DNA from: Raja brachyura
Lineage: Eukaryota
Assembly (NCBI GenBank): GCA_963514005.1
Contig: OY740798.1
Coordinates: 51,522,001-51,586,000, forward strand
Length of the DNA: 64,000 nucleotides
Direction of reading: 5' to 3'
The position numbers and the translations under genes were made by a program. Positions 6,426-51,470 of the stretch are shown one piece after another. The notes under the pieces are model-generated. The model saw only the letters and a program-made list of their open reading frames with translations, was not told where the DNA came from and searched no databases. Positions within the stretch are counted from its first letter, which is position 1. Each line of letters opens with the position of its first letter.

Positions 6426-6868
6426 CTCCTGCAATTAGTGGTATGAAGAATCAGGATGAAGTCGTACATGGTGAAACTGCTGATGTGAGCTGGGATGTGA
6501 CCATGACTACTCTGCTGCCAATGGATATTGTTATATCACTGAAGAGGGGAGAGCGGAAAACAATTAAATTATTTCACTGGCAGTTGTCGGCAGAACAATT
6601 GCAGGGTCCAAAAAGGGTGACACAACCTCTGAAAACTATACCTCATTCATGCAATCAAGATACCTGTATATCCTTCTCTGCTGATCAGCCTGAATTACAA
6701 ACTACCGATAAGGGTCTTTCACACATTCACTGCTGTATTAAGGTGCAGCCTAATTTATCCACGGACGATGCCGCTCAGATCAATATTGAACACAAATCAA
6801 ACACTCCAGACGCCACTTGTTCTGAAGTGCACACTACAGTCCTTAAAGTTGCCTCATGTAATATCTAA
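6426..6868 (+). CDS. Terminal exon of the upstream paralogue (gene A): disulfide-less C1-type Ig domain
   Basis: T-rich acceptor ...tatctttcag, phase 1. APAISG...VSWDVT...DIVISLKRG...W...IKVQPNLSTDDAAQINIEHKS aligns with the exon at 43645. Ends at TAA 6866-6868. Confidence 0.72.
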
Positions 6869-26270: not shown

Positions 26271-29089
26271 AGGACCCTGACTGAGAGTCAGGTAACAGCA
26301 AACTAGAGATATGGAAGGGTAAGGTGTGAAAACGACGGATCAAAGCAGATGTTGATAAGGGAATGTAGAATGTCTACCTTTCACCTTACTCTCAGTCTGA
26401 AGAAGGGTCTCAACCCAAAATGTCAACCAAAACTTCTCTCCAGAGATGCTGCCTGTCCTGCTGAGTTGCTCCAGCTTTTTGTATCTATAGTGTAAACCAG
26501 CATCTGCAGTTCCTTCCTACAAATCTCTGGAGACCAAGGATGGGTAATGTTTTGGGTTGGGACCCTTCTTCAGACAAATGGGGGGTGGAGAGAATGCTGA
26601 AAGAGAGCAGGTGCAAATCAAAGCAGATGGTTAGTCAAAGGCCAGAGATGAAAAGACAGAAGGTGTGAGACAAGTTGAGGTGTGGCGGAGGGGAGGGGTA
26701 CTTACTTACAATTGGTTACTTACAATTGAAGAATTCAATGTTCATAGAAGGTGAACAGCCGGTAGTAGTTGTGCACGTAGGCACAAACGACATCGGGAAG
26801 AAGAGGAAGGAGGTTCTCCAACATGAGATCAGAGAGTTGGGAAGAAGACTGAAATATCGGACTTCTAGGGTGGTTATCTCTGGATTGCTTCCAGTACCTC
26901 GTGCTAGTGAGGACAGGAACAGGGAGATAGGGGATCTGAATGTGTGGCTGAGGGGCTGGAGCAGGGAGCAAGGATTTCAATTTATAGACCACTGGGATCT
27001 CTTCTGGGGTAGGGATGACCTGTACAAAAGGGAAGGGTTACACCTTAACTGGAGGGGGATCGACATTCTGGCTGGCAGGTTTGCTAGGGCTACACGTGTG
27101 GGTTTAAACTAAATAGTGGGGGGAAGGGATTGACAAATTGGGAGTATAAAGATGGAGTTGATGGGGAAGTGGCTACAGGAAAAATTACAAAAGATTCTCG
27201 AATTAATGAGAAGGAAAGCTCGAGAAGGGACAACAGAGTAAGGTCAGGGCCAATTGCGAACAGTGCGAGTGGGAATGTGAATACGGAGGTCAAAGTGCTG
27301 TATATGAATGCGCGAAGTATAAGGAATAAAGTGGACGAGCTTGAGGCTCAGTTAGAAACTGGCAAGTATGATGATGTGGGGATTACTGAGACGTGGCTGC
27401 AAGAGGGCCAAGGCTGGGAACTGAATATTCAAGGGTGTACCTCATATCGAAAAGACAGACAGGTGGGCAGAGGGGGTGGCGTTGCTCTGTTGGTGAGGAA
27501 TGAAATTCAGTCCCTTGCAAGGGATGACATTGAAACAGGAGATGTGGAGTCAGTATGTATAGAACTAAGGAAATGTAAGGGTAAAAAGACCCTAATGGGA
27601 CTAATCTACAGGCCCCCAAACAGTAGCCTGGACATAGGGCGCAAGTTGAATCAGGAGTTAAAATTGGCATTTAGCAAAAGTAATGCTGCAGTTGTTATAG
27701 GAGATTTCAACATGCAGGTAGACTGGGAAAATCAGGTTGGTACTGGACCCCAAGAAAGGGACTTTGTAGAGTGCCTTCGTGATGGATTCTTTGAACAGCT
27801 TGTATTGGAGCCTACCAGGGAGAAGGCAATTCTGGATTTAGTGTTATTTAATGAACCGGATTTGATAAAGGACCTCGAGGTTAATGAGCCATTGGGAGGG
27901 AGTGACCATAATATAGTCAGGTTTAATCTACAATTGGAGAGGGAGAAGGGTAGATCAGAGGTGTCAGTGTTACAGTTGAATAAAGGGGACTATGGAGCCA
28001 TGAAGGAGGAGCTGGCCAAAGTTGACTGGAAAGATACACTAGCGGGGATGACAGTGGAACAACAATGGCAGGTATCTCTAGGAATAATACACAAGGTGCA
28101 GGATCAGTTCATTCCTAGGAGGAAGAAAGATTCCAAGGGGAGAAAGGGGTGACCGTGCTGACAAGGGACGTCAGGGACAGTATCAAAATTAAAGCAAAGA
28201 AGTACAACATAGCAAAGATGAGCGGGAAGCAAGAGGATTGGGTAATGTTTAAAGAACAACAGAAGATAACCAAAAATATGGGGAGAAAAGATGAGGTACG
28301 AAGGTAAGCTAGCCAAGAATATAAAGCAGGATAGTAAAAGCTTCTTTCGGTATGTGAAGAGGAAAAAATTAGTTAAGACCAAAGTTGGACCCTTGAAGAC
28401 CGAAAAAGGTGAATTTATTATGGGGAACAAGGAAATGACAGATGAGTTGAACAGCAGGGCTCTCACTTAACTTTTTTTCCCAGTTGCCACCCGGGCAACC
28501 TTGGCAGCTTTTTAAGTTGCCAAATGACAGTTTAGGTGGTCATTTAACACAGTTTGCATGACACATGCGATAATGTGCTCGGACGAAGTGCGTAGTTACC
28601 AGTCGGAATTATGCTCAATGAAGCATTCACATATTATTTCTGCTTCAAATAAAGTCACACACTAAACATATTCACCAATCAAGACATGATATATACCACA
28701 ATGACATGCAGCAAAATTATAATACAGGATCTCAACTCTTTTTACACATTGCAATTAATGCAATTTCTATTATTTCTTTCCACTTCCAAACAAAAATGTG
28801 GTTGGATTATTCAGTGTATGATCAACCTGTGTCAATAAATCCTGGACCATGCACGCTACAGATTGATGCAAGCATGTTTTCTGTGAAGGACTGAAAATTG
28901 CCATGACATGGCCATGGCATGGGTCGTTATTGCTATTGGCACAGAAACAAACACTTTGGCTTCCCACATAATTTATCCATAACAAAAAATAAAGTTTTCA
29001 AGGAAATTTCTAAAGGCATTTTATGATTATAGCTGTTAAAACCGACTATACCCATCTGACAGGTTAAACATTACACTAAATGACAAGAG

Positions 29090-36362: not shown

Positions 36363-36698
36363 ATTCGTTGGATATGAACATTTTTGCCAGTCCGAAGAAA
36401 GTATTTTTAAAATCAAGTGTTTTGTTGGAATGTAAATTTACTGGGTTTAAAGCACCGCTTGACTTGACAAATGTAGGTGTGCGGTGGTTGTTCGGACCAC
36501 GGAAGGAAGAAATCTATGTTTTTGAAATGGGAGAACATAGGCCCAAGGAACATGGCATAGAAATATCCGGTGAACTATCCAAAGGAGATGCTTCACTTCT
36601 GCTTAATAATGTCCGAGTGGACAACGAAGGGAATTATACTTGCATTGTGTTTGTCACTCCTGAAAAGGCAGAAAAGAGTTCGGATCTGCGAGTTTTAG
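36363..36698 (+). CDS. NCR3LG1: Gene B exon 2: IgV domain, B7-H6-like
   Basis: Acceptor ccatttag, donor G|gtaaaa. VLLECKF...VRW...LSKGDASLLL...DNEGNYTCIVFVTPEKAE resembles B7-H6 GDASL...YRCEVVVTPLKA as recalled. Confidence 0.92.
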
Positions 36699-39510: not shown

Positions 39511-39675
39511 AGTGTAGATGGGGCACTTTGGTCATTGTGGGCAAATTGGGCTGAAGGGTCTGCTTCTGTGCTGAATGCTGTGACCCTTAGACTTAAGAGT
39601 CTTATAATGTGACAGTTATTTCTGGCAATACACTGCATGGCAACTAACCCGAGGTTGCACTTGTCTTTAATACAG

Positions 39676-39996
39676 CTCAGCCGAAGCTGCATTTATCCAC
39701 ACAACATGTTACCATTGAGACTGGCGAGGAGAGGCTGGTGACGTGTGATGCTACGGGATTTTACCCTCAGGCACTTAACATCTACTGGGAAAAAGTATCC
39801 AAGGATAAGACTGAGAAACTAAGCCACGATGTCTTCATCACACCTCCAGTTCATAATCCGGATAAAACCTTTAATGTCTCCAGTAGAATGAGAATTGAAC
39901 CAACTCTAGTTGATAATGGCAATGTGTACAAGTGTGTCGTGGAGCATCCAGCAGATGATAACCGTCGCTCGCTCGAGTTGAGACTCACAGTCAAAG
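39676..39996 (+). CDS. NCR3LG1: Gene B exon 3: IgC1 domain
   Basis: Acceptor tttaatacag, donor AAG|gtatgt. VTCDATGFYPQALNIYWEK...NPDKTFNVSS...VYKCVVEH matches the C1-set pattern and B7-H6 (GFYPEAINITWEK...GTFNVTS...YQCVVRH, as recalled). Confidence 0.93.
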
Positions 39997-42293
39997 GTAT
40001 GTTACATCCTTTGGAAAAGTTTGGTTTAGTTTGTTATTGCCTAATCTACCGAGGTACAGTTACAAGCTTTTGTTTTGTGTGCTCTCGAGTCCAGAAAAGA
40101 TTAGTTTAGTTTAGATATGGTTATATAGTTTAGTTTATTGTCACGTGTACCAAGGTAAAGTGAAAAGCTTTTGTTTGCATGCTATCGAGTCACAGAAACA
40201 TCGAGAAGTAGGTGCAGGAGTAGGCCATTCGGCCCTTCGAGCCAGCATGATCATGGCTGATCATCCAAAATCAGTACCCTGTTCCTGCTTTTTCCCCATA
40301 TCCCTCAATTCCTTTAGCCCTAAGAGCTAAATCTAACTCTCTTGAAAACATCCAGTGAATTGGCCTCCACTGCCTTCTGTGGCAGAGAATTCCACCGATT
40401 CACAACTCTCTGAGTGAAGAAGTTTTTTCTCAACTCAGTCCTAAATGACCTACCCTTTATTCTTAAACTGTGACCCCTGGTTCTGGACTCCCCAACATCG
40501 GGAACATTTTTCCTGCATCTAGTCTGTCCAATCCTTTAAGAATTTAAGACCCCCTCTCATCCTTCTAAATTCCAGTGAATAGTAGTCCAGAATAGAGTAG
40601 TTTGGTTTAGTTTATATTCACGTGTACCAAACTGCAGTGAAAAGCTTTAGCTGTAAGCTAACCAGTCAGCGGGAAGACTGAAATTCTTGCAAGTGTTTAA
40701 TAGACATATGTACCGAAAACGGAACAATTCAATTCTTACTTGGATGGACTACTGTAGATGGGGCATCTTGGCCAGCATGGAGAGGTTGGGCTGAAGGGCC
40801 TATTTCCATGCTGTATGACTCTCTTCCACCACAAGTAGTTACTGTCTCAGCCATTGAGAATGAACATAATCCTGGCACATTTGTGGTTTGGTGGGGAAGT
40901 TTGGTGCTGGTCTTTCATTGACTACCTAGTAATTCATACAGATTTTTGTGGCCCTGGCAGTGCAAGCTTTTGGGAGACCCTGATAGAAATATCTAAGATG
41001 ATTAGAGGCATTGATAAGTGTAGAAGTCAGAACCTTTTTCCCAGAGTGGAAATATCAAAGACTGGAGGACATAGCTTCAAGGTAAACAGGGCAAAGATTA
41101 AAGAGGATGTGCAGAGCAAGTTTTTTACACAGAGAGTGTCTGGAACCCGCTGCCAGGGGTGGTGGTGGAGGCAGATACCATAGTGGCATTAACTAGGCTT
41201 AAATCTGCACATAGATATGCAGGGAATGGAGGGATATGGATTATATACAGGCAGATTAATTTAATTCGGCATCATGGTCAGCATGGACATTGTGGGCCGA
41301 AGGGCCTGTTCCTGTGCTGTACTGTTCTAAATTTGTTCTTTCCATATACCATTAAAATATCATTTTTTTCAGTTGCCTATTTGCCATGAATACACATTAC
41401 AGACACATTACGAACAATTTACAATCTTACCAAAGCCAATTAACTTACAAACCTGCATGTCTTGGATCGTGGGATGAAACCGGAGCACCGAGAGAAACCC
41501 ACACAGGTCACAGGGAGAACGTACAAACTCCGTACACACAGCATTTGTCGTCACGATTGATCCCGGGTTTTTGGTGCTGCAAGGCTGCAACTCCACTGCT
41601 GCGCCACTGTGCCGCTTCTAAAACTAACTATTCCACACCACTCTTGTGTACGTGTGGGTGAGTCGAGTCAGGAATTGAGGTGTGAATAGCCTTCTAAACC
41701 CTTGAGTTATTTCTGATTGCAGCAGAAGTCATGGAATCACTAATTGGAATTCCTAGGCCTTTAATTAAATGGGATATAAATTGCACCATTATGGTTTAAA
41801 TGTTTTTAATAACTGTTCCCCCCCCCTCCCATTTTCCTCCCCTTTATCACCCGCCCCCTTCCACCAAAATTCCTCCTTCCATGTTACATTTCACTCCTCC
41901 CCTTCTCTCCTTATCTGACATCTTTTGTCTCCTTATCATCTCTAGCCTTTTGTCCACCCATCCTCAATCAGTAAAAATCCCTCGTCACCTATCACTTTGC
42001 CCAACCCCCATTTTCTTTCCATCTTTCCCCCACTGCAATCAGACTGAAGGAAGGTCCCGACCTGAAACGTCACCTATCCATGTTCTCCAGAGAAGCTGCT
42101 GAGTTACTCCAGCACTCTGTGTTCTACACTACATTTTGGCTTCTGTAGTTCCTTGTGTCGCCTCTTTAAAATCCTGTCCACTTGTATTGTTATTTACTAT
42201 TGACAAAAATGAATGAGTCTGCAAATAAAGAAGGGTATTTCACGTGGTGTGGTTTTTGTGGGTATGCCTGATTCTTAATGTTTTACATTCCAG

Positions 42294-42407
42294 AACCTGT
42301 GGAATATTCGTCAACAGGGGCTATTGTTGCAGTTGTAGTTATTGCATTACTTCTATTCACAATACTTGCCTGTGGACTCTGGGTTTACTTCGTGAAATTG
42401 AGATCAG
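42294..42407 (+). CDS. NCR3LG1: Gene B exon 4: transmembrane segment
   Basis: Acceptor acattccag, donor CAG|gtaata. EPVEYSSTGAIVAVVVIALLLFTILACGLWVYFVKLRS is a hydrophobic helix followed by basic residues. Confidence 0.9.
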
Positions 42408-43231
42408 GTAATATGACAAATGGAGAAAGTTCCTCAATGCGTTGTAATTGCCTGCCTCGAGTTATAGCAGCTACAGCACGGAAACAGGCCATTCAGCCCA
42501 CCACATCCACGCCGACCATCGAGCACTCTTATACATAAATATAATTTCATTCAGCCCACTTCCCCATGAGCTCGTACCTGATCCGACCACATTCCTCACA
42601 CACAAGCGGAAAGTTACAGGGCACAATTTACCTAACTTTTTGGAGTGCAGGAGGAACCCAAAACACCCAACATGGGGAACATGCAAACTCCACATAGACA
42701 ACATCGGAGGTTAGCATTGAACCCCGCCTGTGTGCTGTGTACTGGAGTTGTGTGTCTTTTGTGATTCTTTGATTCCTTCTTGTTACATTTTCCCAACATG
42801 GAGGGCTGGTGAACTTTTAGTTTCAACCACAGTTGACCCTGTGGTGATTGTATACCCATATAGACAAGCAACCAGGCTTGGAGCTTCTCTTTGAATGGCA
42901 TTCTGGGCATAACTTGTTTCAGTTATAATTTTAGAGATACAGTGTGGAAACAGGCCCTTCCACGCTGACCAGTGATCGCCCCTTATACTAGTTCTATCCT
43001 TCTCACTTGGGACAATAAACAGAAGCCAATTAACCCACAAGCCTATACGTCTGTGGAAACTGGGAGAAAACCCACGCGGTCACAGGGAGAACGTATAAAC
43101 TCCGTACAGACAGCACCCGAGGTCAGGATTAAACCCGGTGTCTGGTGGTGTGAAGTAGCAGTTTTCCATTGCACCTCATTGCCGCCCATATTAACTTGGA
43201 TTAAATTTTGAAAGGCCTGTTCCTGATTGCA

Positions 43232-43411
43232 NNNNNNNNNNNNNNNNNNNNNNNNNNNNNNNNNNNNNNNNNNNNNNNNNNNNNNNNNNNNNNNNNNNNN
43301 NNNNNNNNNNNNNNNNNNNNNNNNNNNNNNNNNNNNNNNNNNNNNNNNNNNNNNNNNNNNNNNNNNNNNNNNNNNNNNNNNNNNNNNNNNNNNNNNNNNN
43401 NNNNNNNNNNN
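43232..43411. other. Assembly gap (180 N)
   Basis: Run of N between exon 4 and exon 5. Confidence 1.
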
Positions 43412-43644
43412 CTTACAGCATAACAATTAAAATGAATGTACAAGAAAGAATATTTAATGTAGGAAGGAACTGCAGATGCTGGTTTACACTGAAGGTAGAC
43501 ACAAATTGCTGTGCGGGTCAGGCAGCATCTCTGGAGAAAAGGAATAGGCGACGTTTTTGGGTCAAGACCCTTCTTCAGACCCTTGTATCTTCAGAAAGAA
43601 CATTTAGATTGCCAAGTCCTATTTACCTGCTTTGTTTTGACTAG

Positions 43645-44082
43645 TTTCTCCAGAGATCAATGGAGCCAATGGACGTCAAACCATGAAACATCATGAAAAA
43701 AAAAAGGCCACTTGGAGTGTTAGTCCATTCCGACCTCGTGAAATTACAATTCACTTATACCTAAAGAGGAAGGGGGATCAGGTGAGAAATCCAATTTTAA
43801 ATTGGAACAGCAAAGAGTATATTCCAGACAGAAATGGAATGATCAATGGAGAGGGTCGCAATGAAGCGAAGATTCTTATGAATTCAAATTGCGTTGATGC
43901 ATCTTTTACACCATTGGATCACGAATATAACATTAATGCAGATGGGACTTACAGTGTGACGATCAATGGAGAAATATATCCAGATGTTAACAAGGATGCA
44001 GGGGCTGAATTAACCATTGAAGTTCAACATAAATCACTGAAACAGCCGATATCAAAGACTTTGATACTGGATGTAAAAGGAG
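43645..44082 (+). CDS. Gene B exon 5: post-TM C1-type Ig domain lacking the canonical disulfide
   Basis: Acceptor tttgttttgactag, donor GAG|gtaaag, 438 nt, phase 1-1. ATWSVSPFRP...NADGTYSVT...ELTIEVQHKSLKQPISKTL. Confidence 0.85.
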
Positions 44083-44144
44083 GTAAAGTATAAATGTTTT
44101 CTTTAATCATTAATGTCTATATATTGTGATTTAATTCTCAATGT

Positions 44145-44705
44145 CTTCAGTCATAGAGTGATACAGCGTAGAAACAGGCCCTTCAGCCCAACTTGCCCAA
44201 GCCGACCAACATGTCAGTCAGTCTGGACACTTCATCCCATCTGCCTACGTTTGGTCCATATCCCTCTAAACCTGTTCTATCCATGTACCTGCCAAAATAT
44301 TTATTTAAAATTGTGATAGTACCTACCTCAACTACCTCGTCTGGCAGCTTGTTCCACACACTCACCACCTTTGTATGAAAAGGTTACCCCTCAGATTCTG
44401 ATAAAATCTTTCCACCTTCCTTATCTTAAATCTATGTCCTCTGGTCCTCGATTCACCTACTCTGGGTAAAAGACTCTGTGCATCTACTCGATCTAGTCCT
44501 CTGATAATCTTCTACACCTCTATTTGATCACCCCTCATCCTCCTGTGCTCCAAGGAATAGAGTCCTAGCCTGCTCAACCTCTCCCTCTAGCTCAGACCCT
44601 CAGATCCCGGCAACATCCTCGTAAATCTTCTCTGCACTCTTTCCAGCTTGACAACATCTCTATTGTAACAAGGTGTCCAAAACTGAACACAATACTCTAA
44701 ATGCA
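44145..44705 (-). mobile_element. CR1 3' fragment
   Basis: CR1 C-terminus and catagagt tail. Confidence 0.85.
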
Positions 44706-45434
44706 TGATTATGCGTTCATATTAACATCTATAATTTGTAACATTGATGTGTTTATGCAATGAGAGCATGGAACAGCACAGCACAGGAACAGCCCCTTTG
44801 GCCCACAATGTCCATGCTGAACATGATGCCAAGATTAACTAATCTCTGCTGCTTGCACGTAATCCATGTCCCTCCATTCCCTGCTCATTCATGTGCCTAT
44901 CTAAAAGCTTCTTAAAAACCACCATTGTGTCTGGTGTCTGCCTCCACCACTGCCCTGGCAGCGTGTTCCACGCTGTGTTTAAAAATGAAACTTGCCCCTC
45001 ACCTCTCCTTTAAACTTTCCCACTCTAATCTTAAAGCTATGCCCCCCAGTCTTTGACATTTCTGCCCTGGGAAAAATATTCTGACTGCCTACCTTTCATC
45101 ATGTATGTCTCGATGGGCCGAAGGGCCTGTTTCCACGCTGTACCTCTAAACTAAACTAAATCAGGACCATTCTCTGGTTGGTAATAGGATGGTTCAATTG
45201 CCTGATGACAACTAATACATTAGTAATAGTAATACATTTGCAATGGAGCGGCTGGAACTGCACGCAATACTCCAACTGTGGCCTAACCAAGGTCTGCAGA
45301 GCTGCATCATGACCTCAACTCCTTTAGGAGATTCATCAGTTGACTCAAGTCACGGAATATTCACACAGTAATGTAATATTTTCTTGCTTTTGTGAATTTC
45401 AACTAGGTGATTTGTTTGTTTTCTTTTCTCAAAG

Positions 45435-45812
45435 TGCCACCCAAGGTTTTAAACATCTTCAAACCCTCTTGCATCATTCACAATAAATCTGCATCTTTGA
45501 TCTGTTCAATCACTGGGTTTAAACCGAGACCGTTACGTATCACGTGGCAACGAAAGAGAAAGAACATGGAGGCGGAAGAAATAGTTCGAATGGAGGAGGA
45601 CAACAGGACAATTATTCCCGGTGGTGACGGGGAGATGTCCAAATATAAACATTACATCAGTGAGATGAAGCATGATGATGAATCCTACAGCATCACCAGT
45701 GTACTCGTGATAGTGCCTGATATACAGCAAGATCAACACTCGCTTTACACGTGTAAAGTACATCACAGCGGCACCGGTGACCAGGAGAGAGAAATCGAGT
45801 TAATGATTGCAG
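45435..45812 (+). CDS. Gene B exon 6: second post-TM C1-type Ig domain (Cys and Trp retained)
   Basis: Acceptor ttttcttttctcaaag, donor CAG|gtatat, 378 nt. LICSITGFKP...ITW...DDESYSITSVL...LYTCKVHH. Confidence 0.9.
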
Positions 45813-50029: not shown

Positions 50030-51470
50030 CTTTGGATCAGTCTTCACTAAAGATGACACAAACAATCTCTCTGATGTACTAGTGGATCTGGGGTGACGAA
50101 GGAACTGAAGAAAATCCACATTAGGCAGGAAATGGTGTTGGGTAGACTGAAGACTGATAAATCCCAAGGGCCCGATGGTCTCATCCCAGGATACTTAAGG
50201 AGGTAGCTCTGGAAATCATAGGCGCATTGGTGATCATTTTCCAATGTTCTGTAGATTCAGGATCAGTTCTTGAGGGTTGGAGGGGAGTTAATGTTATCCC
50301 ACTTGTTAAGAAAGACGGGAGAGAGAAAACAGGGAATTATAGACCAGTTAGCCTGACATTGGTGGTGGGAAAGATGCTGGAGTCAATTATAAAAGATGAA
50401 ATAGTGGCACATTTGGATAGCAGTAGCAGGATTGGTCCGAGTCAGCATGGATTTACGAAGGGGAATTCATGCTTGACTAATCTTCTGGAATTTTTTGAGT
50501 ATGTAACCAGGAAAATGGACAAGGGAGAGCCAGTGGATGTAGTGCACCTGGACTTTCAGAAAGCATTTGATGAGGTCCACATAGGAGATTAGTGGGAAAA
50601 ATGAGAGCACATGGTATTGGGAGTAGAGTGCTGACATGGATAGAAAATTGGTTAGCAGACAGGAAACAAAGAGTAGGGACCCTTTCAGAATGGCTGGCAG
50701 TGACAAGTGAGGTGCCGCAGCTATTTATAATATACATTAATGATCTAGATGAAGGAATTCAAAGTAATATTAGCAAATTTGCAGATGACACAAAGCTGGG
50801 TGGCAGTGTGAACTGTGAAGAGGATGCCATGAGGATGCAGGGTGACTTGGACAGGTCGGGTGAGTGGGCAGATGCACGGCAGATGCAGTTTAATGTGGAT
50901 AAATGTGAGCTTATCCAGTTTGGTGGCAAAAACAGGAAGGCAGACTATCATCTAAATGGTGTCAACTTGGGAAAAGGGGAAGTACAATGGGATCTGGGGG
51001 TCCTTGTTCATCAGTCACTGAAAGTAAGCATGCAGGTACAGCAGGCAGTGAAGAAAGCGATAACAAGAGGAGTTGAGCATAGGAGCAAAGAGTTCCTTCT
51101 GCAGTTGTACAAGGACCTGGTGAGACCGCACCTGGAGTATTGTGTGCAGGTTTGTTCTCCAAATTTGAGGAAGGACATTCTTGCTATTGAGGGAGTGCAG
51201 CGTATGTTCAGCAGATTAATTCCTGGGATGGCGGGACTGTCATGTGTTGACAGAATGGAGCAGATGAGCTTGTAACAGTGCCTCAGAAGGAGGAGGAGAC
51301 CGGTTCTCTGGATGCTTTCAAGATCGAGCTCGTAAAAATAGTGGAGTCATGAGATATGGAGAGAAGGCAGGAACAGGGTACTGATTGTGGATGATCAGCC
51401 ATGATCACATTGGATGGCGGTGCTGGCTCGAAGGGCCGAATGTCCTACTTCTGCACCTATTGTCTATTGT
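50030..51470 (+). mobile_element. CR1 RT and 3' end
   Basis: ORFs 50227 and 50592 with NYRPVSLT, QHGF, YINDL, KFADDTK. Confidence 0.92.

Follow-up and report, generated by a model that had tools for sequence, protein, structure and literature searches.

The window analysed here is a stretch of 64,000 nucleotides from Raja brachyura (assembly GCA_963514005.1, contig OY740798.1, positions 51,522,001 to 51,586,000). On its forward strand lie exons of a B7-H6-like gene and, further upstream, the last coding exon of a paralogue. A sequence-only reading had singled out one of these exons, here called X, as a C1 Ig domain whose core was rebuilt without a disulfide and which carries a long insertion. 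The features are as follows.

6426-6868, forward strand: last coding exon of the upstream paralogue; it encodes another subtype of the X-type domain and closes with a stop codon (BLASTP against X, E = 5e-5).
24992-25133, forward strand: coding part of exon 1, with the start codon (ATG at 24992) and signal peptide, ending in phase 1 (tblastn with Amblyraja P0001, 90% identity; gt at 25134-35).
36363-36698, forward strand: IgV exon of the ectodomain, 112 codons, phase 1-1 (Pfam V-set, E = 8.8e-10; splice sites read).
39676-39996, forward strand: IgC1 exon of the ectodomain, 107 codons, phase 1-1, with the canonical Cys/Trp/Cys (Pfam C1-set, E = 4.4e-12).
42294-42407, forward strand: transmembrane (anchor) exon, 38 codons, phase 1-1, with a hydrophobic stretch followed by basic residues (from the sequence and its splice sites).
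43645-44082, forward strand: X exon, the first post-anchor Ig domain, 438 nt or 146 codons, phase 1-1.
45435-45812, forward strand: D2, the second post-anchor domain, a canonical C1-set exon of 126 codons, phase 1-1 (Pfam C1-set, E = 1.1e-12).

All internal exons of the B7-H6-like gene are phase 1-1. Relatives were sought exon by exon, with no joined gene model as query. The best solved relatives of the IgV exon are CD276 and B7-H6 (E about 1e-9; 1.6e-9 for B7-H6), and the best solved relative of the ectodomain C1 exon is human B7-H6 (NCR3LG1; E = 1.6e-15). A V plus C1 ectodomain near B7-H6, followed by one transmembrane helix exon, identifies the gene as B7-H6/NCR3LG1-like. Human B7-H6 is a ligand of the NK receptor NKp30 and has a short, non-Ig cytoplasmic tail bearing signalling motifs. 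The skate gene product resembles it in being type I with a V domain, a C1 domain, and an anchor, but differs in its tail, which opens with the X Ig domain and goes on with C1-type domains.

In tblastn against the Amblyraja orthologue, D2 is the most conserved part of the gene at 91% identity; X reaches 79%, V 71%, and the anchor exon 51%. A search for more Ig exons of this gene between 45813 and 64000 found none, and the Amblyraja orthologue has about 460 further residues. Either the window ends before the gene does, or the local copy is shorter.

Logan contigs from two public runs were aligned to 39650-45640. That the runs are RNA, at first a guess, is shown by the intron-less joins in the contigs. 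One contig of 632 nt joins 44080 straight to 45433, and the X exon is spliced directly to the D2 exon in two contigs (X1 record 5 and X2 record 16). The second of these, at 2522 nt, contains the C1 exon, 114 unaligned nt, the X exon, and the D2 exon; the unaligned segment has the exact length of the anchor exon. Another contig (X1 record 1, 970 nt) covers the C1 exon without mismatch and runs on into the anchor exon. As ordered, the contigs therefore describe one mRNA encoding V, C1, anchor, X, and the next C1. The intron between the anchor and X exons includes a 180-base stretch of N (43232-43411); going by the RNA contigs, no coding exon can be concealed there. A further contig (X1 record 4) starts exactly at 43645, the first base of the X exon, and several variant RNA contigs lie over 43648-43826. 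These could reflect alternative upstream exons, alleles, or paralogues.

The X exon is preceded by a pyrimidine tract and an ag at 43643-44 and followed by a gt donor at 44083-84. Frame 3 alone is open across it, giving 145 full codons with a split codon at each end. The exon exceeds the ectodomain C1 exon at 39676-39996 by exactly the 39 codons noticed earlier (146 against 107). The canonical disulfide is absent, with W23, L37, and I124 (numbered on the 145-residue translation) at the sites concerned. The sequence-only reading had recognized this by gapless comparison with an ‘exon 6’, which is D2, itself downstream of the transmembrane exon and distinct from the ectodomain C1. The strings it quoted were located in both exons. 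Gapless pairings of twenty-two and twenty-seven residues between X and D2 (45435-45812) place the three residues on canonical B-, C-, and F-strand positions and, together with BLASTP, bear out the changes from C to W, W to L, and C to I at core sites. The BLASTP match of X to D2 has E = 9e-5 as a single comparison, with 21% identity, and that to the ectodomain C1 exon (39676-39996) has E = 0.009. In a Pfam scan of the window copy of X alone, there was no match at E ≤ 1, I-set included.

AlphaFold2, run on an alignment of thirty-five sequences, predicts an Ig sandwich with pLDDT 89.1 and pTM 0.80. The model is a two-sheet Greek-key beta sandwich of nine strands (A, A′, B, C, C′ at residues 48-54, D, E, F, and G); set against the seven-strand A-B-E-D / C-F-G layout of C1 domains, it is predicted to have A′ and C′ as extra strands, and the added C′ strand bears W53. 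Between C′ and D runs a loop of about thirty residues (58-86) with pLDDT of about 55 and poor conservation. The ‘long insertion’ of the sequence-only reading thus stands as to length, and appears as a flexible loop that is predicted to be disordered. Comparison of the model with known structures by Foldseek and VIA-align returned Ig domains only, with V-type and C-type chains mixed; 993 of the 1000 compared chains reached Z ≥ 8, with a top Z of 13.0. The C domain of B7-H6 was among the best matches (Z 12.0, rmsd 2.0, 23% identity). The check proposed with the sequence-only reading, AlphaFold followed by a comparison with C1-set structures, has thus given a confident Ig fold, with best Z values of 12-13.

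A HMMER search with X against 1.84 billion representative proteins found ninety clusters at E ≤ 1e-3, thirty-five of them at E ≤ 1e-10. The closest is a 1256-residue protein of the skate Amblyraja radiata with 71% identity. Source names were looked up for thirty of the ninety clusters. These include cartilaginous fishes (the chimaera Callorhinchus, Heterodontus, Scyliorhinus, Pristiophorus, Amblyraja, Narcine, and Hemitrygon), the bichirs Polypterus and Erpetoichthys, the coelacanth Latimeria, the lungfish Protopterus, several frogs, and one newt; no teleosts or amniotes were among the thirty. Nearly all named homologues are labelled ‘uncharacterized’, and a few are called NCR3LG1 by their sources. 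In some of the proteins, X domains occur in tandem, in three to seven copies. The family of such domains, for which the sequence-only reading had proposed an HMM search, is therefore real, and spans classes of jawed vertebrates.

Across seventy full-length domains, core site 23 is C in 33, W in 28, F in 4, and Y in 2; site 37 is L in 17, V in 13, T in 12, and I in 7; and site 124 is V in 28, I in 25, L in 11, and C in 4. The first site is thus Cys or aromatic, the second aliphatic or Thr, and the third Val, Ile, or Leu. Random degeneration at these positions, which would have told against the idea of a repacked core, is not what the relatives show: the hydrophobic replacements are patterned over all seventy domains. 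Cys persists at site 23 in roughly half of the family; the F-strand Cys is found in only 4/70. A few members (P0041, P0071) keep both the canonical Trp and the F-strand Cys, and intermediate states therefore survive. Several features are new in the family: W53 (62/70), Cys106 (57/70; Ile in the window copy), a K-R-K turn, P112, and A120. X is a genuine, anciently conserved Ig domain without the usual disulfide.

An alternative disulfide in X, pairing Cys106 with Cys23 or with other residues, was considered and rejected. Cys106 is equally common alongside Trp23, and with an odd number of Cys in 41/70 X domains there is no sign of another pairing pattern. The basic turn after strand C reads L-K-R-K / Q-R-K-R-K in X (43759-43771) and D2 (45548-45560), at a place where ordinary C1 domains have x-x-N-G, and its R41 occurs in 59/70 family domains. 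The turn was also considered as a lipid-binding patch; it is at the end of the domain opposite the N-terminus, and would point off the membrane if the domain stands upright.

As to ancestry, the sixty best matches listed for the family profile against the PDB are all chains containing C1-set domains, with E down to 6e-7. They comprise IgA and IgM constant regions, MHC class II beta-2, beta-2-microglobulin, light-chain constant domains, and SIRP. Pfam C1-set (PF07654) is matched by 13/35 family members (best E = 9.5e-9), and a chimaera homologue in the Atlas has C1-set neighbours only. The window copy itself lacks the Cys(B)-Cys(F) pair and strand-C Trp of the C1 set (it has W23, L37, and I124) and falls below the Pfam threshold; its C1-set membership is therefore by transitive homology only. 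In profile-profile comparison with hhalign, X matches D2 at E = 3e-27 and the ectodomain C1 at 2e-16. X and D2 also have the motifs G-F-K-P-R-P, K-R-K, and P-D-I in common, and D2 has a shorter loop in the same place. By profile comparison X is thus closest to D2, and it is therefore a diverged tandem duplicate of it. Judged by these sequence comparisons, the ancestry of X is in the C1 set.

Set beside C1-set domains such as B7-H6 C, MHC class II beta-2, beta-2-microglobulin, and the Ig heavy-chain constant domains, X has the same two-sheet Ig sandwich and keeps G-F-x-P after strand B and H-x-x-L-x-x-P ending strand F. It differs in having neither the B-F disulfide nor the C-strand Trp, in an added C′ strand whose conserved Trp is new, in its 30-residue disordered loop, in the basic K-R-K turn after strand C, and in its position after the anchor. 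The I-set Ig sandwiches of titin, telokin, and obscurin, most of which lack a structural disulfide, reach their fold in the cytosol; the proteins that carry them are soluble or filament-bound and do not form the tails of immune ligands. The A′ and C′ strand pattern of the X model would resemble theirs; unlike titin-type domains, X has no I-set match, and its best sixty profile matches are all C1-set-containing chains. Domain 1 of CD2 and of CD58 is extracellular and lacks the intersheet disulfide, with hydrophobic packing instead, and disulfide loss alone is therefore no proof of a cytosolic origin. Those domains, unlike X, are V-like adhesion domains at the N-terminus of the ectodomain, and we found no specific similarity between them and X.

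The location of X relative to the membrane is central to its interpretation. In forty-three homologues a hydrophobic helix lies no more than 40 residues upstream of the first X domain, with a gap of 1-10 residues in 35/43. The flanks of this helix hold 75 K+R before and 117 after, and 90 D+E before and 43 after; net charge after the helix is positive. Together with the signal peptide and the presence of one helix only, these flanks speak for a cytosolic X, as does the lack of a consistent Cys pairing in X. N-glycosylation sequons before the helix number 99 against 66 expected (1.49), and those after it 141 against 127 (1.11), which is no enrichment. As X follows the anchor in the mRNA, it probably folds inside the cell. 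It begins 3-10 residues past basic stop-transfer residues, which would put it directly under the membrane, in the cytosol, and we infer a cytosolic location for the post-anchor part of the protein as a whole.

On this evidence we favour, with moderate confidence, a main product that contains the anchor, in which X sits inside the cell next to the membrane, as an Ig module that connects the helix with a chain of C1-type domains and folds without a disulfide. X would come first among the modules that follow the transmembrane helix in a type I membrane protein resembling B7-H6 (NCR3LG1), and would have arisen as a diverged tandem duplicate of the C1-set domain D2. During that divergence the intersheet disulfide and core Trp would have been replaced by Trp on the B strand, Leu on the C strand, and Ile on the F strand, and the family would have gained a C′ strand with a nearly invariant Trp and a long flexible C′-D loop. 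An interior re-cored in this way may be what lets X fold without a disulfide. As the leading domain of this chain, X may serve close to the membrane as a structural adaptor that joins the helix to the intracellular Ig domains. The chain in turn could cluster the ligand, act as a scaffold, or couple the cell interior to the ectodomain that faces the NK receptor, by analogy with B30.2 in butyrophilins. Butyrophilins have a B7-related V-C ectodomain, one helix, and an intracellular B30.2 domain, and are a precedent for inside-out coupling. The analogy would extend to a B7-family ectodomain linked by one helix to a folded intracellular domain; that domain is B30.2/SPRY in butyrophilins and Ig here, and the two have no homology.

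The sequence-only reading went further, and explained the re-coring as suited to the reducing cytosol. Its premise fares well, with X on the cytosolic side in the transmembrane-containing mRNA; causation is not established. Cys/Trp/Cys is kept in D2 in 20/20 proteins compared, from skate to frog, and later domains are mostly likewise. One would not expect such retention in a chain that had spent hundreds of millions of years in the cytosol. The skippable anchor cassette, and the Cys that about half of the family has at core site 23, also tell against a cytosolic cause. The cytosol as the driver of re-coring is plausible but unproven, because neighbouring domains did not follow.

A different reading of the same gene is that X works mainly outside the cell, in a secreted V-C1-X-C1 chain produced by skipping the anchor, and that its loss of the disulfide is a structural change specific to this domain, of the kind known from other disulfide-free extracellular Ig domains, and unrelated to redox. 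We consider this possible, though unlikely. Annotated isoforms of Hemitrygon akajei (P0099, 38 residues) and Heterodontus francisci (P0095, 31 residues) lack precisely the anchor exon, and a secreted form carrying X may therefore exist. The reading frame would survive such skipping, since all exons are phase 1-1. In four gene models (P0009, P0034, P0042, and P0051) C1 is joined directly to X with no anchor between them. Gene predictors, however, easily miss short anchor exons, and these anchor-less isoforms and models could be either real secreted forms or cases of a missed small exon. Retention of the anchor is the rule among annotated isoforms (6/7 in Hemitrygon, 4/5 in Heterodontus, and 3/3 in Amblyraja), the 114-nt anchor exon is in both RNA contigs that span the junction, and the exon has been maintained from chimaera to frog. 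The invariant Cys/Trp/Cys of D2 and the return of canonical units further down the tail fit an extracellular chain, whereas the often odd number of Cys in X domains does not. The sequons cut both ways: D2 has an N-x-T common to skates, rays, and one shark, but post-anchor sequons are at chance level overall and the D2 sequon is not conserved beyond elasmobranchs. With the sequon so confined, glycosylation of D2 is indecisive as proof of a lumenal location.

It is highly improbable that X is a defunct or degenerating duplicate of the C1 exon next to it, with random damage as the source of the three substitutions. The window copy has no Pfam match and shares only 21% identity with D2, but its frame is open, its splice sites are intact, and it is present in spliced RNA contigs. 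It is also closer to its Amblyraja orthologue by tblastn (79%) than the V exon is (71%), and it belongs to a family that extends across jawed-vertebrate classes, with patterned substitutions and a confident fold prediction. The spliced RNA and the conserved family together led us to reject decay. We give equally little credence to two misjoined genes (a V-C1-anchor gene and a separate downstream gene starting at the X exon), an idea suggested by an anchor that sits unusually amid a run of Ig exons and by an N stretch before X that could conceal a small exon; it is ruled out by the RNA contigs, one with C1, 114 nt, X, and D2 in order and another with C1 and the anchor, and it also conflicts with the X exon itself, which starts in phase 1 and lacks both a start codon and a signal peptide, and with the identical exon order annotated in many species.

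Returning to X as an intracellular module of an anchored protein, we note that C1-type Ig domains are so far known only outside the cell. A full-text literature search turned up no account of post-anchor Ig domains in B7-H6-like genes, though a prior description is possible. We give an even chance to a broader proposal, that C1-type Ig domains form the intracellular part of an ancient and undescribed family of B7-H6-like NK ligands in cartilaginous fishes, basal bony fishes, and amphibians, in which X is a C1-derived domain evolved to fold without a disulfide under the plasma membrane and Ig domains lie on both membrane sides. A post-anchor chain that truly lay in the cytosol would be an exception to the rule by which C1-set domains are either extracellular or lumenal, and would equip the NKp30-ligand family in cold-blooded vertebrates with a large folded region inside the cell; the tail might then report the internal state of the cell to NK cells. 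The conserved Cys of the neighbouring domains and the skippable anchor exon are reasons for caution on the cytosolic reading. The family also offers dozens of natural C1-derived sequences that have gone without the canonical disulfide over hundreds of millions of years. Some members retain one or both ancestral residues, which makes the family a useful series for work on the repacking of an Ig core, and it is also a candidate disulfide-free scaffold.

The exon of the upstream paralogue (6426-6868) also has W, L, and I at the three core sites. It was found by tblastn with the shark proteins P0002, P0029, and P0078 (E down to 5e-30), and its acceptor and stop codon were read from the sequence. 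The Heterodontus protein P0002 contains this second X subtype seven times, as near-identical tandem copies. Elsewhere in the window, introns and flanks are filled with retrotransposon open reading frames (reverse-transcriptase and endonuclease-like) and SINE-like repeats, at 16832-22126, 27130-28152, 50227-51275, and many other places, on which read depth is 10^4-10^5.
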